Below, in pieces: positions 29,738 to 54,680 of a DNA stretch of 64,000 nt (positions are counted from its first letter, which is position 1; each line of letters begins with the position of its first letter). A program made the translations under genes and the position numbers. Below the pieces are notes generated by a model, which made no database searches, was not told the DNA's origin, and saw only the letters and a program-made list of their open reading frames with translations. Origin of the DNA: Prasinococcaceae sp. CCMP 1430 (taxonomy: Eukaryota; Plantae; Prasinodermophyta); the NCBI GenBank assembly GCA_013416795.1, contig RQSC01000010.1, positions 211,949 to 275,948 of the forward strand, in the 5' to 3' direction.

Positions 29738-30553
29738 TTATTTGTTCATTAATAAATTTTTGGCAAATTGAAATGGAGATTTATATGGAGTCTCTAAATT
29801 AATTAAAGCTTCATCCATACCTAATAAACGCTGTGCTGCGTTTTCCATAGCTAAACCAGACAGCGTTAAGCGTTTACGACTAACTAACGGCTTTCCTCGG
29901 TTAGTTGCAACAATAACTTGATTATCTTCTGGAATAACTCCTAATAAAGGAATACCTAATAAATCTTGAACATCATTAATTGCAAGCATATTATTACCTT
30001 TAATCATATCTGTACGAACACGATTAATAATTAATTTATTATCGAATAAATTATTCGCTTCTAATAAACCAATCACACGGTCAGCATCACGAATAGCAGT
30101 AATTTCGGGAGTTGTAATTAAAATTGCTTCACTCGCGGGTGAAATAGCATTTAGAAATCCAATATCAATTCCTGCGGGACAATCAATCAAAATAAAATTA
30201 TAATCACGTTCTTGTAATGAATCAACAAGCATCGTCATACTTGAACGACTAATATTATAACGTTGACGGGTTTTTGAGATGGCTAACAATGATAAATTTG
30301 ACCATGTTTTATCTTTTACTAAGGCCTGTTCTAAAGTACAATTTTCATTAAAAACATCCATTGCAGTAAAAACAATACGTTTTTCCAAACCTAATAATAA
30401 ATCGAGATTACGTAAACCAATATCCGCATCTAATAAAACTACACGTTGTCCTAGTCGAGCAAGGGACATTCCAATATTTGCAGTTAAAGTTGTTTTACCT
30501 ACACCACCTTTTCCAGATGTAACAACAATAACTCGAGTTTTTTGTTCTTTCAT
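29738..30553 (-). CDS. minD: Septum site-determining ATPase MinD
   Basis: TSGKGGVGKTT, DADIGLRNLDLLLGLE, IDCPAGI, PEITAIRDADRV; C-terminal amphipathic helix PFQFAKNLL. Confidence 0.97.
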   Translation of the reverse strand: MKEQKTRVIVVTSGKGGVGKTTLTANIGMSLARLGQRVVLLDADIGLRNLDLLLGLEKRIVFTAMDVFNENCTLEQALVKDKTWSNLSLLAISKTRQRYNISRSSMTMLVDSLQERDYNFILIDCPAGIDIGFLNAISPASEAILITTPEITAIRDADRVIGLLEANNLFDNKLIINRVRTDMIKGNNMLAINDVQDLLGIPLLGVIPEDNQVIVATNRGKPLVSRKRLTLSGLAMENAAQRLLGMDEALINLETPYKSPFQFAKNLLMNK

Positions 30554-30567
30554 AAACTATATTAAAT

Positions 30568-31734
30568 TTAAATAGAGATAACTTTTTTTTCTTTTTGGGG
30601 TAACACGGGTCGGCTATTTTCATAAAATAACCTTACACTTAAACTAAAGAGACAAATACAAGCTAATTGAGCATTTCCACCATAACTAACGAAAGGTAAA
30701 GGAATGCCGGTAATTGGTAATAAATTGCATGTTACACCTAAATGTATACATGTTTGAAGAATTAAAAAAAGGAAACAACCAAGTGTAATTATTACATCAG
30801 GTTTTTTTATTAATTTTATGAAATTTGATAGATAAAAACTAGTATAAACTGATAAAAAAAGAAAAAAAAACATACTACCAAATATTCCAAAATTTTCTAA
30901 AAAAACAGAAAAAATAAAATCCGCATAATAAACAGGTAATGATTCAAAGGTTGTTTGTCCACAACCGATCCCTAAGCCAAAAAACCCACCTCGAATAATG
31001 GTTTCAAAACTTTGATTAAGTTGTGTTATATTCATATTAGTTGATTCACTACCTAACGTTTGAATAAATGAAATAATCCGATTAAGTTGATACGGATGCA
31101 AAAAGATATTGAATAAAATAAAACTTAAACAAAATCCTATACCTAATATTAAATGTTTATACGAAAGTTGTTGTAAAAAAATAATAATAAATAAAATACT
31201 GAGATATAATAAGCCTGATGCAAAATCAGGTTGTAAAAAAATCCCTAAAAATGTACCAAGGGTAATTAAACCTAAAAAAACGAATTCTTTATACTTTAAT
31301 TCTGTCGTTTTTGTTAAAAGTTGACTTAAACATAAAAGGAAAAATGGTTTTTCAATTTCAACGGGCTGGTATAAAAGTGGTCCTATTTCAACCCAACGAC
31401 GGGCACCATTAATAGAAAAATTTGTTAGTAGTGTATAATTAATGGCTAATAAATTTATAGTTGTTCCTATTTTCCCAATTAAAAAAAAATATCTTTTTTT
31501 CATTTTGAACAATGCTATAATAATTACAAAACTTAAGATCGTCCAACAAAATTGTTTTTTTATAAAAAATAAACTATTTTTATAAATTACAGCGGATGGA
31601 AAACCAGTTGTACTATAAAGGATAAATAAACCAAAAGTAATCCAAAAAAGATAAATCCAAATTAACCAATACAGTGAAACTGAAGTGGATTGAAGGACTA
31701 ATTGATAATGTAGTAATTGTTTTTGTATTTTCAA
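30568..31734 (-). CDS. ftsW: SEDS-family peptidoglycan glycosyltransferase FtsW
   Basis: Multi-TM protein with NGARRW...QPVE..K, QPDF, PYQ..RI, QS...I.RGG..G.G.G, LP...ADFIF and LLP.TG.PLPFVSYGG. The called start is TTG and is uncertain. Confidence 0.93.
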   Translation of the reverse strand: MKIQKQLLHYQLVLQSTSVSLYWLIWIYLFWITFGLFILYSTTGFPSAVIYKNSLFFIKKQFCWTILSFVIIIALFKMKKRYFFLIGKIGTTINLLAINYTLLTNFSINGARRWVEIGPLLYQPVEIEKPFFLLCLSQLLTKTTELKYKEFVFLGLITLGTFLGIFLQPDFASGLLYLSILFIIIFLQQLSYKHLILGIGFCLSFILFNIFLHPYQLNRIISFIQTLGSESTNMNITQLNQSFETIIRGGFFGLGIGCGQTTFESLPVYYADFIFSVFLENFGIFGSMFFFLFLSVYTSFYLSNFIKLIKKPDVIITLGCFLFLILQTCIHLGVTCNLLPITGIPLPFVSYGGNAQLACICLFSLSVRLFYENSRPVLPQKEKKVISI

Positions 31735-32040
31735 GGTTGAGACATTTATATATCTTTAGTAATTTTAAGTTAATGTTTGGTGCTTTCGGCACTATTATAT
31801 ACCTATATAATATACTTTATTTGGAAATAATTTTGTTAAGGAAAGTTTAGTTTTTTAAAAATTAAAGAAGATTATTCTATTATATGATACTATATGGTAT
31901 AATATACAAAGAATATAACGAATAGGTTAAAATTCTCCCTCACTGGGATTTCTTTTTACTTAAAATATTTATTAAAATATGACAAGTAACATTTTTTGTT
32001 AAAGAAAATTAACAAAAAAATTTTTATTCGGAGAAAATTT

Positions 32041-32229
32041 ATGCTTCTAATTTTTCAACTAGCAACATTTGCACTAATTTTTGTTTCTTTTGGTTTAGTA
32101 GTTGGAGTTCCTGTATCATTAGCTTTACCAGACGGTTGGTCATCAGCTAAAGGTACAGTATACTCTGGCCTTGGTTTATGGTTTGCTCTAGTATTCCTTG
32201 TTGGAATTTTAAACTCTTTTGTTATTTAA
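32041..32229 (+). CDS. psbZ: Photosystem II protein Z
   Basis: [25 protein letters not shown]...GILNSFVI; start reassigned to ATG 32041 behind GGAG. Confidence 0.96.
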
Positions 32230-32252
32230 TTTCTTTAATTTAAATAGCGCGC

Positions 32253-32292
32253 TTAAGAATATGTGATTTGTATACAAATCACATATTCTTAA
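32253..32292. repeat. Perfect 40-bp palindrome between convergent psbZ and trnV (probable terminator)
   Basis: TTAAGAATATGTGATTTGTA|TACAAATCACATATTCTTAA. Confidence 0.85.
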
Positions 32293-32315
32293 CATTTAAT
32301 AAATTTCTATAAAAT

Positions 32316-32388
32316 TGGGGATAAACGGGCTCGAACCGCTGACATTCTGCTTGTAAGGCAGACGCTCTACCAACTGAGCTATATCCCC
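32316..32388 (-). tRNA. trnV: tRNA-Val(UAC)
   Basis: GGGGATA/TATCCCC acceptor stem, CTTACAA loop, no intron. Confidence 0.94.
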
Positions 32389-32680
32389 TTCTGTAGTCTA
32401 ATTGTAACATAAAAATTTTAAAATAACAAATTTTAAAAAATTTTTATACATGATAAACCTTTAAACAAACTCTTTGTTTTTTTTTTAATTTTCAGTATAC
32501 TATCTCTATAAGGGGGAGATAATATAAAAAATAGTTTTCTAAAAATTATTTTAATCTAGATCCTAGATTACTCGCTCTAGATACAGATATTTTACTTAAA
32601 TGTTGTACCGGTACAACAAGATAATATCTATAAATAACATTATAATATATATAGAATTATAATAGGCAAGGAGAGAATTT

Positions 32681-33430
32681 ATGGTCTTTGAATTATCGAC
32701 ATATTTTAATGATATGCCTAGTGTGATGGACTTAGCTGCGGTTGAAGTCGGAAAGCACTGGTATTGGTCAGTTGGAGATTTCCAATTACATGGTCAAGTT
32801 CTAGTTGTATCATGGTTTGTAATTAGTTTAATTACAATCGTTATTGCACTAGGTACTAGTGATTTAAAATTATTACCAGAAAAATATTTACAAAACTTAG
32901 TTGAATATCTTTTTGAATATATTCGAGATATTGCTAAAACACAAATTGGTGAAGAAGAGTATCAAACATGGATTCCATTCATTGGTACTTTATTTGTCTT
33001 TATTTTTGGTTGTAACTGGACAGGAGCTTTAATTCCATGGGGAATTATTGAGATCCCAAGTGGTGAATTAGCTGCACCAACAAATGATATTAATACAACA
33101 GCTGCATTAGCTTTATTAACATCAATTGCATATTTTACAGCTGGTTTACGTAAAAAAGGATTTGGATATTTCCAAAAATATGTAGAACCAACACCAATTT
33201 TATTACCAATTAACGTTCTGGAAGATTTTACGAAACCATTATCGTTAAGTTTCCGTTTATTTGGTAACATTCTAGCAGATGAACTAGTTGTTGGGGTATT
33301 ATTATCATTAGTCCCACTAGTAATTCCAATTCCAATTATGCTACTAGGTTTATTTACAAGTGCAATTCAGGCTCTTGTATTTGCAACACTGGCTGGAGCT
33401 TATATTGGTGAAGCATTAGAAGGGCATTAA
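32681..33430 (+). CDS. atpI: ATP synthase CF0 subunit IV (a)
   Basis: [41 protein letters not shown]. Confidence 0.98.
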
Positions 33431-33532
33431 ATCTCCAAATTTTTTTTTTAGAGAATTTTATTTAAGAAGATGGAATATTTTATAGTGGTTATTGATTATA
33501 AAATGATAACCGATATTGCAGGATGATTGTAA

Positions 33533-33793
<261 letters not shown>

Positions 33794-33820
33794 TAACTTT
33801 TAAAAATTTGTTATTATTTT

Positions 33821-33856
33821 AGTATAAGAATAAAGATTTTTCTTTATTCTTATACT
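33821..33856. terminator. Hairpin 3' of atpH
   Basis: 16-bp perfect arms AGTATAAGAATAAAGA / TCTTTATTCTTATACT. Confidence 0.65.
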
Positions 33857-33886
33857 ATTACCTTTTATAGCTTTCACAAAACATTT

Positions 33887-34420
33887 ATGTATTCTGATTT
33901 ATTAACACTAGCCAACATTGACCTTGGTAATGGTTTTGGGATTAATACAAATATCCTAGAAACAAACATTATTAACCTTAGTGTTGTTATTACTATCGTT
34001 ATTTACGCAGTAGGCGGTGCTTTAACAGGTTTACTTGAAAATCGAAAGCGTCTTATTGTTGAATCTTTTAATAAAGCAGACCTTGAATATCAAAATATTC
34101 AAGAATCTTTAACACAAGCTGAAGAATTTTATAAACAAGCTGAAGAAAAAGCTTCGGAAATTAAAATTCAAGGAAAAGAAAAAATTCAACAATTAAAAAC
34201 GTTTTTAATTGATCAAGCAAAAGAAGATAAAGCTCGTTTAGAAGCAACTAAAGAAAGTACACTTAAAGTAGAACAAGAACGAGTATACACTAGTATTCGT
34301 GCGAGTATCAGTGCACGTGCTATTCAAGGTGCTTTAACTCAATTAGAAACTACTTTAGATAAAGATACACAACTTCGTGTACTTGATAAAACAATTCCAA
34401 ACCTAACTGCTTTAAAATAA
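33887..34420 (+). CDS. atpF: ATP synthase CF0 subunit I (b)
   Basis: FGINTNILETNIINL followed by a TM and coiled coil; position between atpH and atpA; no intron. Confidence 0.95.
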   Translation: MYSDLLTLANIDLGNGFGINTNILETNIINLSVVITIVIYAVGGALTGLLENRKRLIVESFNKADLEYQNIQESLTQAEEFYKQAEEKASEIKIQGKEKIQQLKTFLIDQAKEDKARLEATKESTLKVEQERVYTSIRASISARAIQGALTQLETTLDKDTQLRVLDKTIPNLTALK

Positions 34421-34496
34421 AGAGTTATTTTTAACAAACAATTTTTATTGTATAGATGATTTATAAGGAATATTTTCTAAAAGACAAAATTTAATT

Positions 34497-36020
34497 ATGG
34501 TAGCAATTCGCCCTGATGAGATTAGTAGCATTATTCGTCAACAAATTGAAGATTATGCATCTACAGTAAAAGTTACAAATGTAGGTACAGTTCTACAAGT
34601 TGGAGATGGTATTGCACGTGTATATGGTTTAAACAAAGTAATGGCTGGTGAGCTATTAGAATTTGAAGATGGTACTGTAGGTATCGCACTAAACTTAGAA
34701 GCTGACAACGTTGGTGTTGTACTTATGGGTGGTGGTTTCGAAATTCAAGAAGGTAGTTCAGTAAAAGCAACTGGTAAAATTGCCCAAATTCCTGTAGGAG
34801 AAGGGTTCTTAGGCCGTGTTGTAGATGCACTAGCACGACCTGTTGATGGAAAAGGTGATATTACACCTGATGATAGTCGTTTAATCGAATCTCCAGCACC
34901 AGGTATTATTTCACGTCGTTCAGTTTATGAACCACTACAGACGGGTCTTGTAGCTATTGACGCAATGATTCCAATCGGTCGTGGTCAACGTGAGCTTATT
35001 ATTGGTGACCGTCAAACTGGTAAAACAGCTGTAGCCATTGATACAATTATTAACCAGAAAGAAACTGGTGTTATTTGTGTATACGTAGCTATTGGTCAAA
35101 AAGCATCTTCTGTTGCTCAAATTGTTACTTCATTAGAAGAAGCTGGTGCATTAGAGAATACAATTATTGTTGCTGAAAACGCTGATTCTCCAGCGCCATT
35201 ACAGTACTTAGCTCCTTATACTGGTGCTGCTTTAGCAGAATATTTTATGTACACAAACCGTCATACTCTGGCGATTTATGATGATTTATCTAAGCAAGCT
35301 GCTGCTTACCGTCAAATGTCTCTTTTATTACGTCGTCCACCAGGTCGTGAAGCGTACCCTGGAGATGTATTCTACTTACACTCACGTTTACTTGAACGTG
35401 CAGCTAAGCTAAGTGATGCATTAGGCGAAGGAAGTATGACAGCATTACCTGTGGTAGAAACACAAGCAGGGGATGTATCGGCGTATATTCCAACAAATGT
35501 TATTTCTATTACTGATGGTCAGGTATTCTTATCAGGTGATTTATTCAACTCAGGTATCCGTCCAGCAATTAACGTAGGTATTTCAGTTTCTCGTGTTGGT
35601 TCAGCTGCGCAAATTAAAGCTATGAAGCAAGTAGCTGGTAAATTAAAGTTAGAATTAGCACAGTTTGCTGAATTAGAAGCTTTTTCACAGTTTGCTTCAG
35701 ATTTAGATAAAGCAACTCAAAACCAGCTAGCTCGTGGACAACGTCTACGTGAATTACTTAAGCAAGCACAAGGTGCTCCACTTTCAGTTCCACAACAAGT
35801 AGTTACTATCTACACAGGAATTAATGGGTATCTTGATGATGTTGAAGTAGCAGATGTTCGTGAATTCTTATCAGGACTTCGTGAGTATGTTGGTACAAGT
35901 GCTACAGGAATTATTGATAGCATTAATTCTTCTAAGAAATTTGATGATGATGCAGAAGCTATGTTATTAGAAGCAATTGCAACATATAAAGAAAGTTTCT
36001 TTGCTTCTAAAAAAGGTTAA
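34497..36020 (+). CDS. atpA: ATP synthase CF1 alpha subunit
   Basis: [40 protein letters not shown]. Confidence 0.99.
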
Positions 36021-36043
36021 TTTTCATTAATTAACTCTCTCTT

Positions 36044-36080
36044 TATTTGTCAAGTAAACAAAACATTTACTTGACAAATA
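36044..36080. terminator. Hairpin 3' of atpA; right arm contains the trnF -35 element
   Basis: 15-bp arms; TTGACA at 36071-36076 lies 18 nt before TATACT at 36095-36100. Confidence 0.65.
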
Positions 36081-36131
36081 TTATTCTTTTATTGTATACT
36101 TAAATAAATAAATAAGTTAATTAATAATTCA

Positions 36132-36204
36132 GCCGAGATAGCTCAGTTGGTAGAGCAGCGGATTGAAAATCCGCGTGTCACCAGTTCGACTCTGGTTCTT
36201 GGCA
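36132..36204 (+). tRNA. trnF: tRNA-Phe(GAA)
   Basis: GCCGAGATAGCTCAG...TTGAAAA loop. Confidence 0.95.
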
Positions 36205-36443
36205 TAAAATTTATGATATTGTTCTCATTTTGTATATTTTTTGATTATCTTTCTGAATAATCATATAACTATATGAATAAATTATAAATTTTTATTTATG
36301 CATAAATAAAAATTATTATTATGATAGTGTATACTAATCACTAATATTGAGCTTATGCTCCCGGAATAGATGTATGACTAGATATTCTAATTTTATAGAT
36401 TCTAGATAAAAGAGCCTATCTTTACTAAAACTTAAAAAACTTT

Positions 36444-37871
36444 ATGGCACCACAAACAGAAACTAAAACAGGAACAGGGTTCCAAGCCGGGGTAAAAGAT
36501 TACCGTCTAACTTACTACACTCCAGAGTACGTTGTTAAGGATACTGATATTCTTGCAGCATTCCGTGTACAGCCTCAGCCAGGTGTACCAGCTGAAGAGG
36601 TTGCTGCAGCAGTAGCAGCTGAATCATCTACAGGTACTTGGACAACTGTATGGACTGATGGTCTAACTTCTCTTGACCGTTACAAGGGTCGTTGTTACGA
36701 TATTGAGCCAGTTGCTGGTGAAGACGATTCTTACATCGTATACGTAGCTTACCCTCTAGATCTATTTGAAGAAGGTTCTGTAACTAACCTATTTACTTCA
36801 ATTGTTGGTAACGTATTTGGTTTTAAGGCTTTACGTTCACTTCGTCTAGAAGATTTACGTATTCCTCCAGCTTACGTTAAGACTTTCACTGGTCCTCCTC
36901 ATGGTATTCAGGTTGAGCGTGATAAGCTAAACAAGTACGGACGTGCTCTACTAGGTTGTACTATTAAGCCTAAGCTAGGTCTTTCTGCTAAGAACTACGG
37001 TCGTGCAGTATACGAATGTCTTCGTGGTGGTCTTGATTTCACTAAGGATGATGAGAACGTAAACTCTCAGCCATTCATGCGTTGGCGTGATCGTTTCCTT
37101 TTCGTAGCAGAGGCTTCTTACAAGGCTCAAGCAGAAACTGGAGAGGTTAAGGGTCATTACCTAAACGCAACTGCTGCTACTTGTGAAGAAATGCTTAAGC
37201 GTGCAGCTTGTGCTAAGGATCTAGGTGTTCCAATTATTATGCATGACTACCTAACTGGTGGTTTCACTGCTAACACTTCTCTAGCTCACTACTGTCGTGA
37301 TAACGGTCTTCTTCTACACATTCACCGTGCGATGCACGCTGTAATTGACCGTCAGCGTAACCACGGTATTCACTTCCGTGTACTTGCTAAGGCTCTACGT
37401 ATGTCTGGTGGTGATCACCTTCACTCAGGTACTGTTGTAGGTAAGCTTGAGGGTGAACGTGAAGTAACTCTAGGTTTCGTAGACCTAATGCGTGATGACT
37501 ACATTGAGAAGGACCGTTCTCGTGGTGTATACTTCACTCAGGATTGGGTTTCTATGGGTGGTGTTATGCCAGTAGCTTCTGGTGGTATTCACGTATGGCA
37601 CATGCCAGCTCTAGTTGATATCTTCGGTGACGATGCATGTCTACAGTTCGGTGGTGGTACTCTAGGACACCCTTGGGGTAACGCACCAGGTGCTGCAGCT
37701 AACCGTGTAGCTCTTGAGGCTTGTGTTCAGGCTCGTAACGAAGGACGTTCTCTAGCTCGTGAAGGTGGAGATATTATTCGTGCAGCTTGTAAGTGGTCTC
37801 CTGAACTAGCTTCAGCTTGTGAAGTTTGGAAAGAGATTAAGTTCGAATTCGAAACTATTGATACTCTTTAA
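36444..37871 (+). CDS. rbcL: RuBisCO large subunit (green-type form IB)
   Basis: [15 protein letters not shown] carbamylation motif, [21 protein letters not shown]. Confidence 0.99.
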
Positions 37872-38211
37872 TCTATTTTAATATATTTTAGATTCCTTTT
37901 ATGGAATCTAAAATGTATTAAATTTAATAATTCTTATTAATTATTTGTTTAAATTTTGTTTTTTCGATTTTTTATTTAAATTTCTTTGTAGGAACAATAA
38001 TGCTTAATAATATTTAATTTAAATAAGTCTTAAAGAGGCTATATGACTTTTTAACCTTCCTTAATTTGGTATTATTTATAACGTAAAGATGTAAAACAAA
38101 AATCTTTGCAAATGTACAGTAACAAAGAATTCTGATCGTGTACTACAAAATATAAAGTTTTGTAAAAATTTATTTATTGTTTAGTCAAACAATAAAATGG
38201 GAAAATATATA

Positions 38212-38218
38212 TAAAAAA

Positions 38219-38253
<35 letters not shown>

Positions 38254-38481
38254 TATGCTTAACACATGCAAGTCGTACGAAAACTTTTTTTGCTTGCAAA
38301 GAAAGTTTTAGTGGCGAACGGGTGAGTAACGCGTAAGAATCTGCCCTCAGGAAGGGGATAACAGTGGGAAACTACTGCTAATACCCTATAAGCGCATGCG
38401 TAAAAGCCTTCGGGCACCTGGGGATGAGCTTGCGTCTGATTAGCTAGTTGGTGAGGTAATGGCTTACCAAGGCGATGATCA

Positions 38482-38536
<55 letters not shown>

Positions 38537-39079
38537 TCTACGGGAGGCAGCAGTGGGGAATTTTCCGCAATGGGCGAAAGCCTGACGGAGCAATACCGCG
38601 TGGAGGATGACGGCCTATGGGTTGTAAACTCCTTTTCTTTGAGAAGAAGTCCTGACGGTATCAAAGGAATAAGCATCGGCTAACTCCGTGCCAGCAGCCG
38701 CGGTAAGACGGAGGATGCAAGTGTTATCCGGAATTATTGGGCGTAAAGCGTTTGTAGGTGGAAAAATAAGTCTATTGTTAAATCCAGGAGCTTAACTTCT
38801 GTCCAGCGATATGAAACTATTTTTCTTGAGGGTGGTAGGGGTAGAAGGAATTCCTAGTGTAGCGGTGAAATGCGTAGATATTAGGAAGAACACCAAAGGC
38901 GAAGGCATTCTACTGGGCCAATCCTGACACTGAGAGACGAAAGCTAGGGGAGCGAATGGGATTAGATACCCCAGTAGTCCTAGCCGTAAACGATGGATAC
39001 TAGGGGATACGCGAATCGACTCGTGTATGCTCGCAGTTCACACAGTAAGTATCCCGCCTGGGGAGTACGCTCGCAAGGG

Positions 39080-39136
<57 letters not shown>

Positions 39137-39228
39137 TGATGCAACGCGAAGAACCTTACCAGGACTTGACATACCATAGACATTTTTATGAGAGTAATTA
39201 TTTCCTTCGGGACTATGGATACAGGTGG

Positions 39229-39294
<66 letters not shown>

Positions 39295-39548
39295 TCTTTT
39301 GTTACCCCTATCGAGAGATAGGGGGAATCGAAAGAGACTGCCGGTCATAAACCGGAGGAAGGTGAGGATGACGTCAAGTCAGCATGCCCCTTACGTTCTG
39401 GGCCACACACGTGCTACAATGGGCAAGACAATAAGTAGCTAACCTGCGAAGGTACGCAAATCTAAGAAACTTGCCCTCAGTTCGGATTGGAGGCTGCAAC
39501 TCGCCTCCATGAAGTCGGAATCGCTAGTAATCGCCGGTCAGCCATACG

Positions 39549-39601
<53 letters not shown>

Positions 39602-39721
39602 TGGCTATGCCCGAAGTCATTACCCCAACCTCGGAGGGGGATGCCTAAGGCAGAGTTAGTAACTAGGGTGAAGTCGTAACAAGGTAGCCGTACTGGAAGG
39701 TGCGGCTGGATCACCTCCTTA
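38212..39721 (+). rRNA. rrs: Plastid 16S rRNA (ends approximate)
   Basis: AGAGTTTGATCCTGGCTCAG at 38219; GTGCCAGCAGCCGCGGTAA; 3' GATCACCTCCTT anti-SD. Confidence 0.98.
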
Positions 39722-39818
39722 ACTATCTTATTCTATTAAGCATAGTTGTCGATCACATCAGAAATTCTACTGTAATCTATCTATTCAAACAATGAATGGA
39801 CTATAAAACACCTTTTGT

Positions 39819-39834
39819 GGGCTATTAGCTCAGG

Positions 39835-39877
<43 letters not shown>

Positions 39878-39892
39878 GTCCAGAATAGCCCA
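39819..39892 (+). tRNA. trnI: tRNA-Ile(GAU), intronless
   Basis: GGGCTAT/ATAGCCC acceptor stem, CTGATAA loop, in the 16S-23S spacer. Confidence 0.96.
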
Positions 39893-39895
39893 GGT

Positions 39896-39968
39896 GGGGG
39901 TATAGCTTAGTTGGTAGAGCACTGCCTTTGCAAGGCAGATGTCAGCGGTTCAAGTCCGCTTACCTCCA
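39896..39968 (+). tRNA. trnA: tRNA-Ala(UGC), intronless
   Basis: G3:U70 pair, TTTGCAA loop; starts 3 nt after trnI. Confidence 0.96.
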
Positions 39969-40010
39969 GAGAGAGTTTAACTCTCTATATAGCATTATAA
40001 AAAAGAAAAA

Positions 40011-42961: not shown

Positions 42962-43153
42962 TTTATGTTTTTTTAATTTAAAGTATTTAACCAGAAGTAT
43001 TTTTTTGATAACTTTTCGTTGATAAAATGAAAAATAAAAGTAAAGTAAAAATAAAATTATTCTAAGGTATAATATATAGTAGAGATAATAAAAAGAGAAA
43101 GTAATTTTAGTTTTGGTTCTTTTTATTATATTTTATTATTGGAGAATTTTATT

Positions 43154-44212
43154 ATGACAATTGCTATCGGTAAAGAACAGCAAAATCGTGGCTGGTTTGA
43201 CCAAGTTGATGATTGGTTAAAGCGTGACCGTTTCGTATTCGTAGGATGGTCTGGGCTACTTCTACTTCCATGTGCTTATAATGCACTTGGTGGTTGGTTA
43301 ACAGGTATTACTTTTGTAACATCTTGGTATACTCATGGTCTTGCATCTTCATTCCTTGAAGGTTGTAACTTCCTAACTGCAGCGGTTTCAACGCCTGCTA
43401 ACGCTATGGGACATTCATTACTACTTATTTGGGGTCCTGAAGCTCAAGGTGATATTACACGTTGGTTCCAGCTTGGAGGTCTTTGGACATTCGTAGCACT
43501 ACACGGATCATTTGGTCTAATTGGTTTCATGTTACGACAGTTTGAAATTGCTCGTGCTGTAGGACTACGTCCTTACAACGCTATTGCTTTCTCAGCACCA
43601 ATTTCAGTATTTGTTTCTGTATTCTTAATTTACCCACTAGGACAATCTGGTTGGTTCTTCGCACCAAGTTTTGGTGTAGCAGGAATTTTCCGATTCATTC
43701 TTTTCTTCCAAGGTTTCCATAACTGGACACTAAACCCATTCCATATGATGGGTGTTGCTGGTGTACTTGGTGCTGCACTTCTATGTGCAATTCACGGTGC
43801 AACTGTAGAGAACACAATTTTTGAAGATGGTGATGGAGCAAACACTTTCCGTGCATTCAACCCAACTCAATCAGAAGAAACATACTCAATGGTAACAGCA
43901 AACCGTTTTTGGTCACAAATTTTCGGTATTGCATTCTCTAACAAGCGTTGGTTACACTTCTTCATGCTATTTGTACCTGTAACAGGTCTATGGATGAGTG
44001 CTATTGGTGTTGTTGGATTAGCTTTAAACCTTCGTGCTTATGATTTCGTTTCTCAGGAAATCCGTGCTGCGGAAGATCCAGAATTTGAAACATTCTATAC
44101 TAAAAACATTCTACTAAACGAAGGTATTCGTGCATGGATGGCTGTTCAAGACCAACCACACGAACAACTTGTATTCCCAGAGGAGGTACTGCCACGTGGA
44201 AACGCTCTTTAA
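43154..44212 (+). CDS. psbD: Photosystem II D2 protein
   Basis: MTIAIG...[16 protein letters not shown]...[10 protein letters not shown]; start reassigned to ATG 43154. Confidence 0.99.
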
Positions 44213-45581
44213 TGGAAGTCTTGTTATTGGTGGACGTGATCAAGAATCAACAGGATTTGCTTGGTGGTCTGGTAACGCACGTCTAATTAATCTTTCAGGA
44301 AAATTATTAGGTGCACACGTTGCACATGCTGGTCTTATCGTTTTTTGGGCTGGAGCTATGAACCTATTTGAGGTTGCTCACTTTGTACCAGAAAAACCTA
44401 TGTACGAGCAGGGTCTTATTTTATTACCACACCTAGCAGCTCTAGGTTGGGGTGTTGGACCTGGTGGTGAAGTTATTGATACATACCCATACTTTGTATC
44501 AGGTGTACTTCACTTAATTTCTTCAGCAGTTTTAGGTTTCGGTGGTGTTTACCACTCACTTTTAGGTCCTGAAACACTAGAAGAATCTTTCCCATTCTTT
44601 GGATATGTTTGGAAAGATAAGAACAAGATGACAACAATTTTAGGTATTCACCTTGTTGTTCTTGGAATCGGAGCATTCCTTTTCGTTTGGAAAGCTATGT
44701 ACTTCGGTGGAATCTATGATACATGGGCTCCAGGTGGTGGAGATGTTCGAATTGTAACAAACCCAACACTTAACCCAGGTATTATTTTTGGTTATCTTTT
44801 AAAGTCACCATTTGGTGGTGACGGTTGGATTTGTTCTGTAGATAACCTTGAAGACGTTGTTGGAGGTCATATTTGGATTGGTTCAATCGAAATTCTTGGT
44901 GGTTTCTGGCATATCTTTACAAAGCCATGGGCTTGGGCACGTCGTGCATTTGTATGGTCTGGTGAAGCTTACCTTTCATACAGTCTTGCAGCTGTTTCAA
45001 CAATGGCATTTATTGCAGTACCAATGGTTTGGTACAACAATACTGTTTATCCTAGTGAATTCTTTGGTCCAACTGCGGCTGAAGCTTCACAGTCTCAGAC
45101 ATTCACTTTCCTTGTACGTGACCAGCGTTTAGGTGCTAACGTTGCATCTGCACAAGGTCCAACAGGTCTTGGTAAGTACTTAATGCGTTCTCCTACTGGT
45201 GAAATTATTTTCGGTGGTGAAACAATGCGTTTCTGGGATTTCCGTGGTCCATGGGTAGAACCTTTACGTGGTCCTAACGGTTTAGATCTAAACAAAATTA
45301 AAAATGATATTCAGCCATGGCAAGAACGTCGTGCTGCTGAGTACATGACACATGCACCACTTGGTTCATTAAACTCAGTTGGTGGTGTAGCAACAGAAAT
45401 TAACGCTGTAAACTATGTTAACCCACGTTCATGGTTAGCTACGTCTCATTTCTGTCTAGCATTCTTCTTCTTTGTAGCTCACTTATGGCATGCTGGTCGT
45501 GCTCGTGCTGCTGCAGCCGGGTTTGAGAAGGGTATTGATCGTGATACTGAACCAGTATTATCAATGCGTCCACTTGACTAA
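44196..45581 (+). CDS. psbC: Photosystem II CP43 protein
   Basis: GTG start (METLFN) with GGAGG SD at 44182-44186; 17-nt overlap with psbD; canonical CP43 sequence. Confidence 0.98.
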
Positions 45582-45613
45582 TTTTAATATTAGTTAGTGT
45601 TAACCTTATAATT

Positions 45614-45649
45614 TTATTGTTGTTCTGTTTAAAAACAGAACAACAATAA
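45614..45649. terminator. Hairpin 3' of psbC
   Basis: TTATTGTTGTTCTGTTT / AAACAGAACAACAATAA. Confidence 0.65.
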
Positions 45650-45810
45650 TTAGATTTTTTCTATTAATAATTTTTTTTATTTGACTATTTATTTTTGTAA
45701 TTTGAAATTAAATTATTTAGGTTTAATTTATATTATTAACTTATGTCAATAAGTAATCTTAGCTTAGGAACTATCAATAATAATAAAATTTATTTTTGTT
45801 TTCACGTTTT

Positions 45811-45877
45811 ATAATCTATAAAGTATTTAAGTAAAAAGGTTGAAATTGCCTTTTTACTTAAATACTTTATAGATTAT
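45811..45877. terminator. Long hairpin 3' of psaB
   Basis: 29-bp perfect arms with a 9-nt loop. Confidence 0.75.
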
Positions 45878-45921
45878 AATAGTAAATTATAAACTCCTAA
45901 CTATTTAACTTGCAGTAAAAT

Positions 45922-48126
45922 TTAACCAAATTTACCACTCGTCGATGCAATTAGGAAAGATGCATATGTAAAGATAAATCCAACTCCGTAATGAGCTAAA
46001 CCTACTAAACGTGCTTGTAGAATTGATAATGCTACTGGTTTATCTTGCCAACGAATTAGGTTTGCAATTGGAGTACGTTCGTGTGCCCAAGCCAGAGTTT
46101 CAATAAGCTCTTGCCAGTAACCACGCCATGAAATTAGGAACATGAAACCAACTGCCCAGATTAAGTGTGCAAATAGGAATGTCCATGCCCATACAGATAA
46201 ACTGTTCATACCAAAAGCATTATAACCGTTAATTAATTGTGATGAGTTTAACCATAAGTAATCACGGAACCAACCTAATAAATATGTAGATGATTCATTA
46301 AATTGTGCAACATTTCCTTGCCATAACGTTAAATGCTTCCAATGCCAGTAATATGTTGTCCAAGCAATTGTATTTAACATCCAGAAAACTGCTAAATAGA
46401 ATGAATCCCATGCAGAAATATCACATGTTCCACCACGTCCAGGTCCATCACATGGGAAACTGTAACCAAAATCTTTTTTATCTGGCATAAGTTTAGAACC
46501 ACGTGCATCAAGAGCACCTTTTACTAGAATTAGTGTTGTAGTATGTAAACCTAGTGCAATTGCATGGTGAACTAAGAAATCACCAGGTCCAATTGTTAGG
46601 AATAATGAATTTGTTTTACTGTTAATCGCATTAAGCCATTCAGGTAACCAAATTCCTTTACTTGCAATTGCTGCTGGGTTCGTTGGTGATGATAAGAAGA
46701 ATTCAAATCCATAAGCTGTTTTACCATGAGCTGATTGTACAAATTGTGCAAATACTGGCTCAATTAAGATTTGTTTCTCTGGTGTACCGAAAGCTTGCAT
46801 TGCATCATTATGACAATATAATCCAAGCGTATGGAAACCTAAGAATAATGAAACCCAACTTAAATGTGAAATAATTGCTTCTTTATGTTCTAAAACACGG
46901 TATAACACGTTACCTTTGTTCTTTTCTGGATCGTAATCACGGATAAAGAAAATAGCACCGTGTGCAAAAGCACCACACATAATAAATCCAGCAATATACT
47001 GGTGATGAGTGTATAATGCAGCTTGTGTTGTGAAATCTTGTGCAATAAATGCGTACGCTGGTAAAGAGTACATATGCTGTGCAACCATTGAAGTAATGGT
47101 ACCTACAGATGCTAGAGCAAGCCCTAACTGCATATGTAATGAGTTATTTAGTGTATCATATAAACCCTTATGTCCTGTACCAAGTTCACCATCTGGTGGT
47201 GTGTGAGCATCAAGAATTTCCTGAATACTATGACCAATACCAAAGTTTGTACGGTACATATGACCCGCCACAATAAATACTACTGCAATAGCTAAATGGT
47301 GATGTGCCATATCTGTTAGCCATAAACTTTCAGTCTGTGGGTGGAAACCACCAATAAAGGTTAGGATAGCTGTACCAGCTCCTTCTGAAGTATTAAAGAT
47401 ATGTCCTGATGTATCCGGGTTTTGTGCATATACACCCCAGTTACCTGAGAAGAATGGTTTTAAACCTTCAGGGTGTGGTAAAGCTGTTAGGAAGTTACCC
47501 CAACGTACATGTTGACCACGAGATTCTGGAATTGCTACGTGTACTAAGTGTCCAGTCCATGCTAATGAACTAACACCAAAAAGTCCAGATAAGTGGTGGT
47601 TTAAACGAGACTCAGCATTTTTAAACCATGCTACGCCAGGTGTAAAACGTGGTTGTAAGTGTAACCATCCACCAAATAAAAATAGACCAGCTACAATTAA
47701 TAAGAAAATTGAACCTAAATATAGGTCCATGTTAGTACGCATACCAATTGTGTACCACCATTGGTAAACACCGGAATAACAAATGTTTACCGGTCCTAAA
47801 GCCCCACCTCGTGTGTAAGCGTTAATTGCTGATTCTCCAAAGTGTGGATCCCAAATTGCATGAGCAATCGGACGTACATGAAGTGGGTCAGCAACCCACT
47901 GTTCAAAATTACCTTGCCAAGCAACATGGAATAAGTTACCTGACGTCCATAAGAAAATGATTGCAAGTTGACCAAAATGAGAAGCAAAGATTTTACTATA
48001 TAAAAGTTCTTCACTCATTCCATCATGGCTCTCAAAGTCGTGAGCTGTTGCTACTCCGAACCATAAACGACGTGTCGTTGGATCTTGTGCTAGAGCTTGA
48101 CTGAATCGCGGAAATTTTTTCGCCAT
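45922..48126 (-). CDS. psaB: Photosystem I P700 apoprotein A2
   Basis: [22 protein letters not shown]; [15 protein letters not shown]; start reassigned to ATG 48126 behind GGAG. Confidence 0.99.
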
Positions 48127-48182
48127 TGTTTTCTCCAAATAATATTCGATATCGAAATCTAAATTGTTTCACTTTAGGAATT

Positions 48183-50438
48183 CTATCCAACTGCACAAAT
48201 ACGTGCTAAGAAGAATGCCCAAGTTGTACAAATTCCACCAAGTAAGTAATGTGCAACACCTACTGCACGACCTTGTGTAATACTTAATGCACGTGGTTGG
48301 ATTGCTGGAGCAACACGAAGTTTGTTATGTGCCCATACAATAGATTCAATTAATTCCTGCCAGTATCCACGTCCACTGAATAAGAACATTAAACTAAATG
48401 CCCAGATGAAGTGTGCAGCTAGGAATGTAAGTGAGTATGCAGAAAGTGCAGAACCATATGCCTGTAATACTTGTGATGATTGAGCCCATAAGAAATCACG
48501 TAGCCAACCATTAATAGTGTTTGCAGTTAATGCAAAGTTACCACCTGTAATATGTGAAATACCTTGATCTGTTACTGTTCCCCATACGTCAGATTGCATT
48601 TTCCAACTGAAGTGGAAAATATCAACAGAAATACAGTTATACATCCAGAATAGACCTAAGAATACATGATCCCAACCAGATACCTGACATGTACCACCAC
48701 GTCCAGGACCATCACATGGGAATCGGAAACCAAGATTTGCTTTATCTGGAATTAAACGTGAACTACGAGCAAAAAGTACACCTTTTAATAAAATTAACAC
48801 TGTTACATGAATAGTAAAAGCGTGAATATGGTGAACCATAAAGTCAGCAGTTCCTAATGGAATCGGCATCATTGCTACTTTTCCATTAATTGCGATTGTA
48901 TCACCACCCCAAACAGGGCTTGTGCCTAAAAGTGCATTTGGAGCTGTTAGATCTGGTGCACTCATATGTGTTTGTTGAACCCACTGTGCAAATACTGGCT
49001 GTAATTGTAACGCAGTATCTGAGAACATATCTTGTGGACGTCCTAATGCACTCATTGTATCATTATGGATGTATAAACCAAATGAATGGAATCCTAGGAA
49101 AATACATACCCAGTTTAAATGAGAAATAATAGCATCACGGTGACGAATCACACGGTCTAATACGTTGTTATAGTTATTTAATGGATCATAATCACGAACC
49201 ATAAAGATTGCCCCATGAGCCGCAGCACCACAAATACAGAATCCACCAATCCATGTATGGTGAGTAAATAGTGATAGCTGAGTTCCGTAATCAACAGCAA
49301 TATATGGGTAAGCTGGCATTGCATACATGTGGTGTGCAACAATAATACTTAAAGAACCAAATAATGCAAGGTTAATAGCAAGTTGTGCATGCCATGATGT
49401 TGTTAAAATTTCATATAGCCCTTTATGTCCGTTTCCAGTGAATGGTCCACGGTGAGCTTCAAGAATTTCTTTGAATGAGTGTCCAATACCCCAGTTTGTA
49501 CGGTACATGTGACCAGCAATAATAAATAATACTGCTACTGCTAAATGGTGGTGTGCAATATCTGTTAACCATAATGCACCTGTAACAGGGTTTAGACCAC
49601 CTTTAAACGTAAGGAAATCTCCGTATGCAGCCCAGTGCATTGTAAAGAATGGTGTTAATCCTTGAGCAAAACTTGGATATAGTTGTGCCATTAATTGACG
49701 GTCAAGTAGAAATTCGTGAGGTAATGGAATTTCTTTTGGATCAATACCAGCATCTAATAATAAGTTAATTGGTAAGGCTACATGAATCTGGTGACCTGCC
49801 CAAGCTAATGATCCTAATCCTAGTAATCCAGCAAGGTGGTGGTTCATCATAGATTCAACACTTTGGAACCATTCTAGCTTTGGTGCTGCTTTATGGTAGT
49901 GGAACCAACCAGCAAAGAACATTAGCCCTGCTAATACTAATCCGCCAATAGCAGTACTATATAGTTCAAGTTCCGTTGTAATTCCGCTTGCACGCCATAA
50001 CTGGAAAAATCCTGACGTAATTTGGATACCTTGGAAACCACCTCCAACATCACCATTTAAAACTTCTTGACCAACAATTGGCCATACAACTTGTGCACTT
50101 GGTTTGATGTTTGTTGGATCAGTTAACCAAGCTTCATAGTTTGAAAAACGTGCTCCGTGGAAATACATACCACTTAGCCAAATTAAGATGATTCCTAACT
50201 GACCGAAGTGAGCACTGAAAACTTTACGAGAAATATCTTCTAGATCGGTAGTGTGACTATCGAAATCGTGAGCATCAGCGTGTAAGTTCCAAACCCACGT
50301 AGTTGTAGTTGGACCTTTGGCTAACGTACGAGAAAAGTGTCCTGGTTTAGCCCACTTTTCAAACGATGTACTTACCGTGTTTGTATCAACAAGAATTTTA
50401 ATTTTTTTTGCTTCATGCTTTGGTGGACGAATTGTCAT
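48183..50438 (-). CDS. psaA: Photosystem I P700 apoprotein A1
   Basis: [13 protein letters not shown]; [15 protein letters not shown]; contiguous (not trans-spliced); ATG at 50438. Confidence 0.99.
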
Positions 50439-50715
50439 CAAGCATCTCCTATATTCTAATAATAATTATTTGCTGTCATAGAATGACACCAATTTTAGTT
50501 CATATGTTTTATTAATATGAAAATTCTTCTTAGCTGTTTTAAAAGAAATATACTTTCTTTCTGTAAAAAGTATATCATTCTTTAAATATATAAGAGGGAC
50601 CAATAATTCGCATAAATTACATTTTCTATATATTTGGTTTATTTAATAGTTACTCTATGATCATGATATAACCTATACATATATAACGAATGCTTTAGTT
50701 TAAGGAAACAAAATT

Positions 50716-52245
50716 ATGAAATTAGCTTATTGGATGTATATGGGGCCAGCTCATATTGGGACATTACGCATTGTTAGCTCATTTAAAAATATGCATGCTT
50801 TAATGCATGCCCCATTAGGTGATGATTATTTTAATGTTATGAATTCAATGTTAGAACGTGAACGTGATTTTACACCAGTTACTACTAGCGTCGTAAATCG
50901 CCATGTTCTTGCTCAAGGTTCCCAAGACCGTGTTTTAAATAATATTTGTAGAAAAGATCGTGAAGAAAGTCCAGATTTAATTGTCGTAACCCCTACGTGT
51001 ACCTCAAGTATTTTACAAGAAGATTTAAAAAATTTTATTGAACGTGCATCAATTTCAACTTCATCAAATATCTTATTAGCAGATGTAAATCATTATCGTA
51101 TTAATGAATTTCAAGCAGTTGATAAAACATTACAGCAAATTGTTGAATATTTTTGTAATTCAGAAACTATTTCATCAGTTGAAAAAACTGAGGAGCCGTC
51201 GGTTAATTTAATTGGATTTGTTGCCCTTGGGTTTCATTCAACACATGACTATCAAGAATTACAACGAATTTTAAAATCTTTAAATATTAAAATTAATGTT
51301 ATTTTACCTGAAAAATGTACAGTAGAACAGTTAAAAACATTGCCAAAGGCGTGGTTTAATATTGTTCCTTACCGTGAGGTTGGTTTGATGACGGCCAAAT
51401 ATTTAGAAAGAAATTGGAATATGCCTTATGTTTCAACGATCCCATTAGGGCTAGTTGAAACAGGTAAATGGGTAAAAAATATCGAATCATTATTAAATAC
51501 TTCGTCTTTATGTAAATCCAAGGTTAATTTTACTTCTTTTGTTCAAAAACAAACTTTTTTTATCTCACAAGCTGCTTGGTTTTCGCGCTCAATTGATTGC
51601 CAAAATTTAACAGGAAAAAGGGCTGTGGTTTTTGGTGATGCAACTCATGCTTCTACAATAACCAAAGTTCTAGCTCGTGAGATGGGGATTTTTGTCGCTT
51701 GTTCTGGTACATATTGTATTCATGATAATTTATGGTTTACTGAACAAATTCAAGGTTTCTGTGATGAAATTATTATTACAAATGATCATGCACAAATTTG
51801 TGAAATGATTGAACGTATTGATCCAACAGCAATTTTTGGTACTCAAATGGAACGTCATGTTGGAAAACGATTAAATATTCCATGTGGGGTGATTTCATCA
51901 CCTGTTCATATTCAAAATTTCTCTCTTGGTTATAGACCATTTTTAGGGTATGAAGGAACAAATCAAATTGCAGATATTGTTTATAATTCTTTCACATTAG
52001 GAATGGAAGATCATTTATTAGAGATCTTTGGTGGTCATGATACAAAACTAACTAGTCCGGTTACTTCTGAAACAGATATTAAATGGGATTCGGAGGCACA
52101 AGAAGAGTTAAACCACATTCCAGGATTTGTTCGTAAAAAAGTTCAAATAAATACTGAGCGTTATGCGAAAACTTTAGGAGTAAATTTAATTACACTTGAT
52201 ACTTTTTATTCTGCAAAAGAAAATTTAGAATCTCAAAAATCGTAA
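50716..52245 (+). CDS. chlB: Light-independent protochlorophyllide reductase subunit B
   Basis: [51 protein letters not shown]. Confidence 0.98.
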
Positions 52246-52350
52246 TTTTTTATATTATTTTCTTATCAAATTTTATGTAGAAAACTTTATTTGAGTCTTT
52301 TTTTTTGTTATACTATATTTAGAGAAGTATTAAATTACTTCTCTAAAGAT

Positions 52351-52422
52351 GCCACGGTCGCCTAAGGGATGGGCATCAACCTTCTAAGTTGTCGTGTGTA
52401 GGTTCGAATCCTATCCGTGGTA
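52351..52422 (+). tRNA. trnR: tRNA-Arg(UCU)
   Basis: GCCACGG/CCGTGGT acceptor stem, CTTCTAA loop, GGTTCGAATCC. Confidence 0.88.
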
Positions 52423-52435
52423 ATGCTTTTTTATA

Positions 52436-52465
52436 TTGGACGTTTTGAATATTTTATGGTATAAT
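52436..52465 (+). promoter_or_regulatory. Promoter for trnH and possibly the downstream orf122-ftsI unit
   Basis: TTGGAC-18 nt-TATAAT with a TG extension. Confidence 0.55.
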
Positions 52466-52482
52466 AAAAGTATAAATAAAGT

Positions 52483-52558
52483 GGCGGGCGTCGCCAAGTG
52501 GTAAGGCAATGGATTGTGACTCCATTATTCGCGGGTTCGATCCCCGTCGTTCGCCCCA
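52483..52558 (+). tRNA. trnH: tRNA-His(GUG) with encoded G-1 and apparent encoded CCA
   Basis: G-GCGGGCG...TTGTGAC loop...CGTTCGC-C-CCA. Confidence 0.95.
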
Positions 52559-52584
52559 TTTTCGTTGTTTTTTTTTGTATTAAT

Positions 52585-52953
52585 ATGAAAAGAATTTTTT
52601 TTTTCAATTCGTTTTATTATTTACAATTAATATCTATTATTATTTTGATCAGTAGTTTATTTACGTGTAAACTTTATATAAGTAGTCAAACGCAAATTAA
52701 AAAAGCCTATTTACGATTAGAAACGCTTAATCATTATTCACATTTTTTAATGCTTGAAGCTAATTTAGTTGAATTTAAGAATTTAAATATGTCTAAAGCT
52801 AGTAATTTATATTCTTTTTATTGGGCTGAGTATAACACGATTCCCTTATTACCCGTATCTGAGAAAACTACTAAACCTTTTAGCAGCTTAACAAAAGATT
52901 TTGACCGAACTCATAATCAATATTCAATGTATGTATGGCCGCTATTTAATTAA
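52585..52953 (+). CDS. orf122: single-pass membrane coiled-coil protein, candidate FtsL-like divisome subunit
   Basis: ATG 26 nt after trnH (the ORF-track GTG start lies inside the tRNA). Short N-tail, hydrophobic segment at about residues 11-32, heptad-patterned region, LMLEAN motif. Ends 50 bp before ftsI on the same strand. Confidence 0.6.
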   Translation: MKRIFFFNSFYYLQLISIIILISSLFTCKLYISSQTQIKKAYLRLETLNHYSHFLMLEANLVEFKNLNMSKASNLYSFYWAEYNTIPLLPVSEKTTKPFSSLTKDFDRTHNQYSMYVWPLFN

Positions 52954-53003
52954 TAAAGTAATTTGTAATGTTAAAGTAAATAAAAAAATTTCTACTCATT
53001 ATT

Positions 53004-54680
53004 ATGAGGACTATTTTTTATAATCGCTTTCAATTTTTATCGTATTTTTTTTTTTCTTGTTATCTAATAATTGTTTTTCGTCTTTTTAGTCTTACTTTTT
53101 TTTCGAAATTAACACAACAAATTTCTCAACCATCTGGGTTACCTAAAAAAGCTTTCTCTCGTCGTATTATCTGTGATACTTATAAAATTCCTTTGGCTTT
53201 TGATCAATCGACGTATGATATTTATGTATATCCAGCGGCAGCGAATGGACATTTTTTAGAAATTAGTCGTAAATTAGCACCGGTTTTGGAATGTCAACCA
53301 TTAGCTTTATATGATTTTTTATCACGTCAATCTAATTATACGCCACTAATTTTTAATCTACATCCCAATAAAGCGCAACGTATTAAAGCCTATAACGTTC
53401 CAGGTATTGATATTTTAGTTAAGTCTTCTCGTATTTACCCTTATAAAGAATTAGTAGCTAATTGTATTGGTTATGTTAATTCAACTAATCAAGGTTTATC
53501 AGGGATTGAACAAAGTTGTAATTTTATTGTCCAAAATATAAGTTCAGTTTCAAATTATTCGATTATTTCAAATTTAGTTTGGTTACAGACCTCTTTGGAT
53601 ATTCGTTTACAACGTCAATTTTCTTCCATTTTAAAGGAAGGCTTAGAATTAGTGTCTGCAAAGCGTGGTCTAGGTGTTGTATTAGATTGTTATTCTGGTG
53701 CGATTAAAGCTTTAAGTATTTTCCCTCAGTTTAACCCATATAAGTACACAGAAACCCCTATGGCTATTTTAAATCCATGGCCAATTTTAGAATTGTATGA
53801 ACCCGGTTCTACTTTTAAACCTATTAATTTAGCCATTGCTTTAGAATCAAATGTTATTAATTCGAAAACAGTAATAGTGGATGAAGGGTGTATTAAAACA
53901 AAAAGTTCATATTTTTTTAATGCTACTTCTTCTCAAGAACAATTTATTCGTTCACAACCAAATATTTTAACATTAGAAACCTTAGTGGCTCGTTCTAGTA
54001 ATATTGGTTTAATTCATATTATGAGTCGATTAAGTCCTTTAGTGTATTATAAGTGGTTAAAGTATTTAAATATTTCACCTTTGAACTCGTTTAATATGAA
54101 TTTACCTTATGAAAATCACGTAAATTTACCATTTCAAAGAGAATTTATTAAAACACCAGAAACAGCTTTATTTTTTGCTTTAGGGCATGGTTTTTCATTA
54201 ACCCCATTTCAGTTACTTCATATTTATACAAGCTTATTTAATCAGGGAAAACCAGTACAACCATTTTTAGTTAAAAAATTTGTATTAGCTCCTAATACTT
54301 TTTTAAAGACTTCTTCAAATTTGGACCAACAAAGTTTCCACGATCAAAATCGGGTATTCTCAGTACGTACCTGTGGGTTTTTATTGCGTTTATTAGAAGA
54401 AGTAATTGAATATGGAACAGCTCAAAAAGGAGCATTTTCAGATTATCGTTTAGCGGGTAAGACTGGAACTTCTGTTTATACTTTACAAAGCAAACGTCGT
54501 TTAACTAGTTTTTTAATTGCTTATCCATCCCCGAGTCCCCAATATATTTGTTTCTTATTACTGGACTTAGATCCACGATCAAATCAACAAAGTTCGACGA
54601 CAGCGGTACCTTTACTTAAAGCACTTTTAGATATTTTAGTTCAAATTTCCTGTCTTTCCCCGGTACTATCTGCTAAATAA
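53004..54680 (+). CDS. ftsI: Class B penicillin-binding protein (peptidoglycan transpeptidase) FtsI
   Basis: N-terminal TM; RRIICD..K.PLA, RIYP....A..IGY, G.SGIE and SLD.RLQ pedestal motifs; catalytic STFK (53808-53819), SSN (53994-54002) and KTG (54459-54467). Confidence 0.94.

Follow-up and report, generated by a model that had tools for sequence, protein, structure and literature searches.

Four genes of a candidate septal peptidoglycan synthase lie in a 64,000-nucleotide stretch of contig RQSC01000010.1 (hereafter, the window), most of which is a green-algal plastome. They were placed here by a preliminary description made from the letters of the DNA, and family models and coordinates confirm each position. 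On the minus strand, minD (29738..30553), encoding the division-site ATPase, adjoins ftsW (30568..31734), encoding a peptidoglycan glycosyltransferase of the SEDS family. On the plus strand, orf122 (52585..52953), which encodes a conserved bitopic membrane protein, precedes ftsI (53004..54680), encoding a class B penicillin-binding protein (PBP), or transpeptidase, of 558 amino acids. The tRNA gene trnH-GUG, located with ARAGORN at 52484..52558 on the plus strand, stands immediately before orf122, which starts 26 nucleotides past it and ends 50 nucleotides short of ftsI. The two halves of the system are 21 kb apart in the window.

The ftsI product combines a pedestal domain (PBP_dimer, PF03717) with a Transpeptidase domain (PF00905), and direct reading of the sequence shows an N-terminal membrane anchor of hydrophobic residues (12-33). 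Its active-site motifs, S269-T-F-K272, S331-S-N333 and K486-T-G488, are invariant across four plastid orthologues. When metagenomes were scanned for more plastid ftsI loci, only the same species (locus L090) and one distant match came up.

The ftsW gene lies 14 nucleotides upstream of minD on the same strand, and the two form an operon spanning 31734-29738. This unit, proposed in the preliminary description, is repeated in the related plastid loci L002-L005. FtsW matches PF01098 with 195 bits over model positions 3-351 of 356, that is, a full-length FTSW_RODA_SPOVE domain. The aspartate in its YYADF motif is aligned with the catalytic D255 of Thermus thermophilus RodA (HTD255F), and both the conserved tryptophan (ARRW) and the QPxExxK motif (QPVEIEK) are retained. 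The reading frame has no ATG ahead of codon 78, but the family model aligns from residue 22; translation therefore starts at the TTG at 31734, which gives 388 codons, or at another non-ATG codon. The FtsW proteins of relatives are longer by 60-75 residues. MinD scores 362.6 bits against TIGR01968, for which the curated equivalog cut-off is 212.9, and has the deviant Walker A motif SGKGGVGKTT and a C-terminal amphipathic membrane-targeting tail, ending ...SPFQFAKNLLMNK. A conserved small open reading frame (ORF) that could encode FtsB was sought upstream of ftsW, where only psbZ was found, and neither FtsQ nor FtsB was seen in the plastome part of the window.

The organization of these genes was compared across related plastomes. 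In the window, L001 and L090, trnH, the orf122 homologue and ftsI stand in tandem on one strand, with the 50-nucleotide gap between the last two. L001 encodes an FtsI 82% identical to that of the window, and the FtsI proteins of L002-L006 are about 60% identical to it. In these latter loci the order is ftsW, minD and trnR, then a 91-codon orf122 homologue and trnH on the opposite strand, and then ftsI, so that no more than 5 kb holds ftsW, minD, the homologue and ftsI. Two of them hold the whole set, with the inverted orf/trnH block, as a single 5-kb cluster (L002:242-5431 and L004:1834-6884). Despite this rearrangement, an orf122 homologue is found beside ftsI at every locus with known flanking DNA, and trnH always lies immediately before it on the same strand. 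The orf122-ftsI unit of the preliminary description is thus a tandem in three loci without being a fixed arrangement, as the trnH-orf block is inverted in two relatives.

All four genes are under purifying selection. We calculated omega, the ratio of nonsynonymous to synonymous substitution rates, with the Nei-Gojobori method for two orthologue pairs, the window with L001 and L002 with L004; for minD and ftsW, which have no L001 orthologue, the window was paired with L004 instead. The values were 0.03-0.04 for minD, 0.11-0.15 for ftsI, 0.28-0.32 for ftsW and 0.14-0.29 for orf122, with synonymous sites near saturation (dS 0.55-1.1 for orf122). Four seawater metatranscriptomes contain contigs over ftsI, and in two of them orf122 is covered as well. 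One error-free contig (52350-52827) carries trnR, trnH and the first 243 nucleotides of orf122. No contig bridging orf122 and ftsI was found among the metatranscriptome contigs listed. In metatranscriptome run X3, depth was 158 for psbE, about 12 for ftsI and 0 for chlB, and this unevenness favours RNA over contaminating DNA as the source of the reads.

We then considered orf122, which is a genuine, lineage-restricted and previously unremarked gene. Five different sequences make up its family, each of them on a marine plastid contig (the window, L001, P0125, L002 and L004); they share 51-75% identity, a conserved start methionine and 33 residues invariant in all five. The core comprises the first 91 residues, where two members end; the other three carry a variable tail with a common YSxYxW end motif. 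Neither a word-based search nor an exhaustive profile search of 1.8 billion representative proteins retrieved anything outside the family. Searches of orf122 and its orthologues against Pfam and NCBIfam at permissive thresholds gave nothing relevant, the ESM Atlas returned only low-score unnamed clusters, and a scan of viral contigs gave no match. Two other frames were discarded as orf122: a 122-codon ORF at 38980-39348 on the minus strand, which lies inside the 16S rRNA gene, and a GTG-started version of 151 codons, which owes its additional 29 codons to in-frame reading of trnH.

The AlphaFold2 model of orf122 predicts one continuous helix over residues 2-64, with a membrane span at about residues 10-28 followed by some 35 more residues. 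The block-mean predicted local distance difference test (pLDDT) score is 80-94 over residues 1-50 and falls to 71 by residue 60; the part after residue 64 is modelled as a weak second helix and then a disordered tail. A heptad pattern can be read in the sequence (Y31, S34, I38, A41, L45, L48, S52, L55, A59, V62), and the N-terminal tail, predicted to be stromal, is short (about 10 residues). This build, a membrane span running into a coil of about five heptads, fits FtsL, FtsB and DivIC, but is not specific to that family.

We also examined ftsI neighbourhoods fetched from 80 bacterial genomes (cyanobacterial loci L010-L035). At 22 of the 26 cyanobacterial loci with upstream DNA, the gene next upstream of ftsI, in the same orientation, is a bitopic ORF of 150-230 residues, and one more locus has such an ORF 2 kb upstream; members include L022:1956-2408, L014:1106-1588 and L010:1499-2191. 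The family has no Pfam or NCBIfam model. Its proteins have a disordered basic N-terminal tail (about 50-120 residues), a membrane span and, by structure prediction, a 72-residue helix, as well as a GLxPxxPxxxIFLxP segment and a PLGY end. We aligned it with a set of 21-25 bona fide FtsL proteins from rsmH-ftsL-ftsI loci; five members sampled as a control all match Pfam DivIC/FtsL. The hhalign comparison gave a probability of 66-74% and E-values of 3-6e-5, over an alignment that spans the coil and the 'A..LGM..P' motif. The score of 37.1 exceeded both the maximum of 150 column shuffles (11.5) and that of the reversed template (19.6). FtsL and FtsB are listed as absent from cyanobacteria in a recent review (PMC7766704). 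On these profile comparisons, the cyanobacterial ftsI-upstream family is a candidate FtsL, and it is a more solid by-product of the analysis than the role proposed for orf122.

A profile hidden Markov model (HMM) of this cyanobacterial family was searched against all 552 stop-to-stop ORFs of the plastid DNA analysed. The four highest-ranking matches were orf122 and three of its orthologues (E-values 0.02-0.19), and the next match had an E-value of 5.9. The similarity of orf122 itself is weak (10 bits, E-value 0.02). All alignments between the two families share one register, which covers the last part of the membrane span and the coil adjoining it (Y-x-Q...Y..LE.L), and both proteins are predicted to form a single long helix that leads from the membrane span into the coil. 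With hhalign, the orf122 family aligned with the cyanobacterial family at an E-value of 0.0085 and with bona fide FtsL at 0.0043, the latter over 44 columns (span end and coil), with probabilities of only 4.7% and 7.9%, respectively. The score of the comparison with the cyanobacterial family was 21.8, and 150 column shuffles reached at most 16.0. In the reverse search, with the orf122 family against 2,057 cyanobacterial ORFs, ftsI-upstream genes made up 6 of the top 20.

Several results weigh against the assignment of orf122 to the FtsL/FtsB class. The hhalign probabilities stay at 4-8% overall, and the reversed template scored 15.6, which means that a generic architecture of membrane span plus coil accounts for much of the signal. 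The reverse search was not significant (best E-value 1.4). Searches with four orthologues against the FtsL, DivIC and FtsL_2 models (PF04999, PF04977 and PF19579) gave nothing up to an E-value of 10, and no NCBIfam model matched orf122. Among PDB sequences, the orf122 profile found chance matches (ion channels) and no FtsL or FtsB chain. Foldseek matched the AlphaFold2 model to no PDB entry, as one would expect of a lone helix. The C-terminal 'LGM..P' motif of FtsL has no counterpart in orf122, some family members are 91-residue forms without the tail, and the short N-terminal tail is more FtsB-like than FtsL-like. Finally, in L002 and L004 the homologue is divergent and transcribed away from ftsI. 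Given the inversion in L002-L006, the constant partner of orf122 is trnH, and the gene is not obligatorily part of an ftsI transcript. The preliminary description had called orf122 FtsL-like: the gene is real and has an FtsL/FtsB-like build beside ftsI, but its homology to FtsL falls below accepted thresholds. We consider its membership of the FtsL/FtsB class, judged from profile similarity and position, a serious possibility that stops short of being probable. The stricter proposition, that orf122 and the cyanobacterial ftsI-upstream gene are both true, highly diverged FtsL orthologues, appears unlikely, though not far-fetched.

The strongest competing explanation is that orf122 encodes a lineage-specific membrane protein of the plastid that has no part in division, such as a thylakoid or envelope assembly factor. 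Its proximity to ftsI would then reflect a small trnR-trnH-orf-ftsI block that has so far stayed unbroken, and the FtsL-like look of the protein would be no more than that of any membrane span followed by a coil. This would account for the lack of any family match, the low hhalign probabilities with a reversed template scoring 15.6 against 21.8, the reciprocal E-value of 1.4 and the fixed linkage to trnH, rather than ftsI, in a block that is inverted in two loci. It explains less well why the cyanobacterial HMM selects exactly the orf122 family from 552 ORFs, many of them hydrophobic, why six of the top 20 reverse-search hits among 2,057 ORFs are ftsI-upstream genes, and why the alignment register is identical throughout the comparisons. 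Moreover, the adjacency to ftsI has outlasted several rearrangements, and the evolutionary rate of orf122 tracks those of ftsI and ftsW. We regard an unrelated membrane protein as a realistic alternative, albeit on the doubtful side.

A second alternative concerns the enzymes: the FtsW-FtsI pair could be an envelope-wide wall synthase resembling RodA-PBP2, or a relic with a non-septal role. FtsW scores almost equally against the TIGR ftsW and rodA models (192 and 184 bits, each below its own cut-off), its best match among solved SEDS proteins is T. thermophilus RodA (108 bits, compared with 83 for FtsW), and the majority of its distant sequence matches are labelled RodA. However, its nearest named relative is a SEDS paralogue of Synechococcus elongatus (165 bits), 38 bits clear of the next match (127), and this paralogue itself scores higher with the ftsW model (299) than with the rodA model (269). 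The paralogue lies between apcE-apcA-apcB-apcC and ccdA-ccs1-glnB. The partner enzyme also points to septal function, as FtsI fits solved FtsI/PBP3 chains (85 bits) far better than MrdA (PBP2; 34 bits) and is closest, among named proteins, to cyanobacterial FtsI; in addition, ftsW shares its operon with minD. The identification of the plastid SEDS protein as FtsW rather than RodA is only moderately supported by these comparisons, and an envelope-wide or relic function seems quite improbable. That orf122 is a chance open frame, as its missing database annotation and the many spurious ORFs of AT-rich plastid spacers might suggest, is refuted to the point of being negligible by omega values of 0.14-0.29 at 51-75% identity with near-saturated dS, by the 33 invariant residues and conserved start methionine, and by the RNA contigs over the gene.

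By analogy with the established bacterial FtsW-FtsI system, FtsW would polymerise lipid II in the inner envelope of the plastid, and FtsI would cross-link the resulting glycan strands, so that peptidoglycan would be present at this envelope. Lipid II would be supplied by nuclear-encoded Mur enzymes, and MinD would help to position a nuclear-encoded FtsZ ring. Within such a machinery, orf122 would most likely act with FtsI and FtsW as an FtsL/FtsB-class subunit, and it may descend from the gene directly upstream of ftsI in cyanobacteria. We hold with high confidence that the plastome keeps functional ftsW, minD and ftsI genes. The full statement, a functional ftsW-minD operon and ftsI with orf122 as their FtsL/FtsB-class partner, is a proposal that we place just below probable.

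The system shares several features with the bacterial FtsW-FtsI-FtsQLB complex (Pseudomonas aeruginosa, PDB 8BH1): a SEDS protein that keeps its catalytic aspartate, an N-terminally anchored class B PBP that has all three active-site motifs, and, encoded beside ftsI, a bitopic helical protein of small size. It differs in that FtsQ and FtsB were not seen in the plastome part of the window. Unlike bacterial FtsL and FtsB, moreover, orf122 has no significant sequence match and an N-terminal tail of only about 10 residues. With the cyanobacterial family, orf122 shares the same-strand position upstream of ftsI, the single span that continues into a long helix and, in register, the juxtamembrane motif Y-x-Q...Y..LE.L, whereas it has neither the long disordered N-terminal tail nor the GLxPxxPxxxIFLxP segment and PLGY end. 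The moss plastid system, comparable in its cyanobacterial ancestry, its nuclear-encoded precursor enzymes and, presumably, its peptidoglycan-dependent division, relies on nuclear MurA-G, MraY, Ddl and a class A PBP; here, in contrast, the polymerase and transpeptidase candidates are an organelle-encoded pair of SEDS protein and class B PBP (SEDS-bPBP).

Much of this is already on record. Plastid ftsI and ftsW were reported in Nephroselmis olivacea, some Prasinococcales and Picocystis (PMC4194372) and in prasinophytes and charophytes generally (PMC4164004), and plastid-encoded ftsI, ftsW and minD have been published for Nephroselmis, Prasinococcales, Picocystis and early streptophytes (PMC4194372, PMC4164004, bioRxiv 10.1101/109975). 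Compared with the plastids of prasinophytes and early streptophytes, including Mesostigma and Chlorokybus, the window holds the same ftsI, ftsW and minD in the same kind of genome, and nothing essential differs. For Prasinoderma coloniale, the complete set of ten core peptidoglycan enzymes has been reported from the nuclear genome (PMC7455551). The core claim of the preliminary description and part of its prediction were therefore already known. Its organelle-encoded SEDS-bPBP pair, placed with MinD, remains a sensible reading, since the genes are intact, constrained and transcribed; it is the natural modern interpretation of genes long published, and not a discovery. The nuclear Mur enzymes that it predicted are likewise on record for P. 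coloniale and hence not new. By contrast, orf122 receives no mention in PMC4194372, PMC4164004 or bioRxiv 10.1101/109975, in which ORFs lacking a function or domain were counted as non-genes. The only new element is orf122, the small conserved protein encoded beside ftsI, as a possible, not proven, FtsL-type partner.

The plastome surrounding these genes begins at about position 6,100 and occupies some 58 kb of the window. Positions 1-6085 have a GC content of 64.6%, and the remainder of the window 33.8%. The GC-rich part, which contains long ORFs and is nuclear-like, gives way to the plastid DNA over a few bases around 6090, through either an assembly join or the integration of plastid DNA into the nucleus in the very recent past. 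The plastome genes include clpP, ycf4, accD, rpoB/C1/C2, chlL, chlN, chlB, petA, psbA and an ftsH-like gene, together with atpI/H/F/A, rbcL, psbD/C, psaB/A, psbE/F, rps4, tufA, rpoA and 17 tRNA genes. The rRNA operon is unbroken (rrs-trnI-trnA-rrl-rrf), and no ndh gene occurs across the 58 kb. Contigs with 99% identity are present in Tara Oceans data. The plastome would belong to a marine prasinococcalean or prasinodermophyte picoalga. P. coloniale, whose plastome measures 77,750 bp with 65.9% A+T (PMC4194372), appears to fit best because of the GC content, the intact rRNA operon, the lack of ndh genes and the adjoining nuclear-like DNA of 64.6% GC. The gene content, the streamlined layout without inverted repeats and the cleanly excised genes are like those of published prasinococcalean chloroplast DNAs (PMC4194372), which agrees with the earlier remark that the plastome had shed genes from its operons. 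One feature counts against this placement: trnS(uga) lies directly before the ftsH-like gene, and prasinococcaleans are said to lack this linkage (PMC4194372). The species assignment is therefore not secure.

Some further observations concern the plastome outside the division genes. The ftsH-like gene (27071-29647, plus strand) encodes 858 amino acids in which an AAA ATPase domain is the only match, with no M41 peptidase domain detected. A 404-codon ORF between rps4 and trnT (56550-57764, minus strand) has no Pfam match at an E-value of 1e-5. An Rfam match to IsrR (186 bits; 44610-44796, minus strand) lies antisense within psbC. It is probably a cross-hit rather than evidence for an antisense RNA, because isiA, the target of IsrR, is a paralogue of psbC. 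A scan for promoters and terminators found sites no more numerous than in shuffled sequences.

For the ftsW, ftsI and minD genes, the analysis confirms that these plastid genes are intact, under selection and expressed in the ocean, which adds nothing new. The significance of orf122 is conditional. If it is an FtsL-class protein, an alga from a lineage that branched off ahead of the chlorophyte-streptophyte split (PMC7455551) would encode in its organelle the complete membrane core of a regulated SEDS-bPBP synthase. Taken with the cyanobacterial family, it would fill the 'missing FtsL' gap of cyanobacterial and plastid divisomes and offer a defined protein for experiments in tractable cyanobacteria. 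Were both proteins FtsL orthologues, cyanobacteria and the most ancestral green plastids would possess an FtsL activator of FtsWI, which in this alga would still be organelle-encoded alongside its two enzyme partners.

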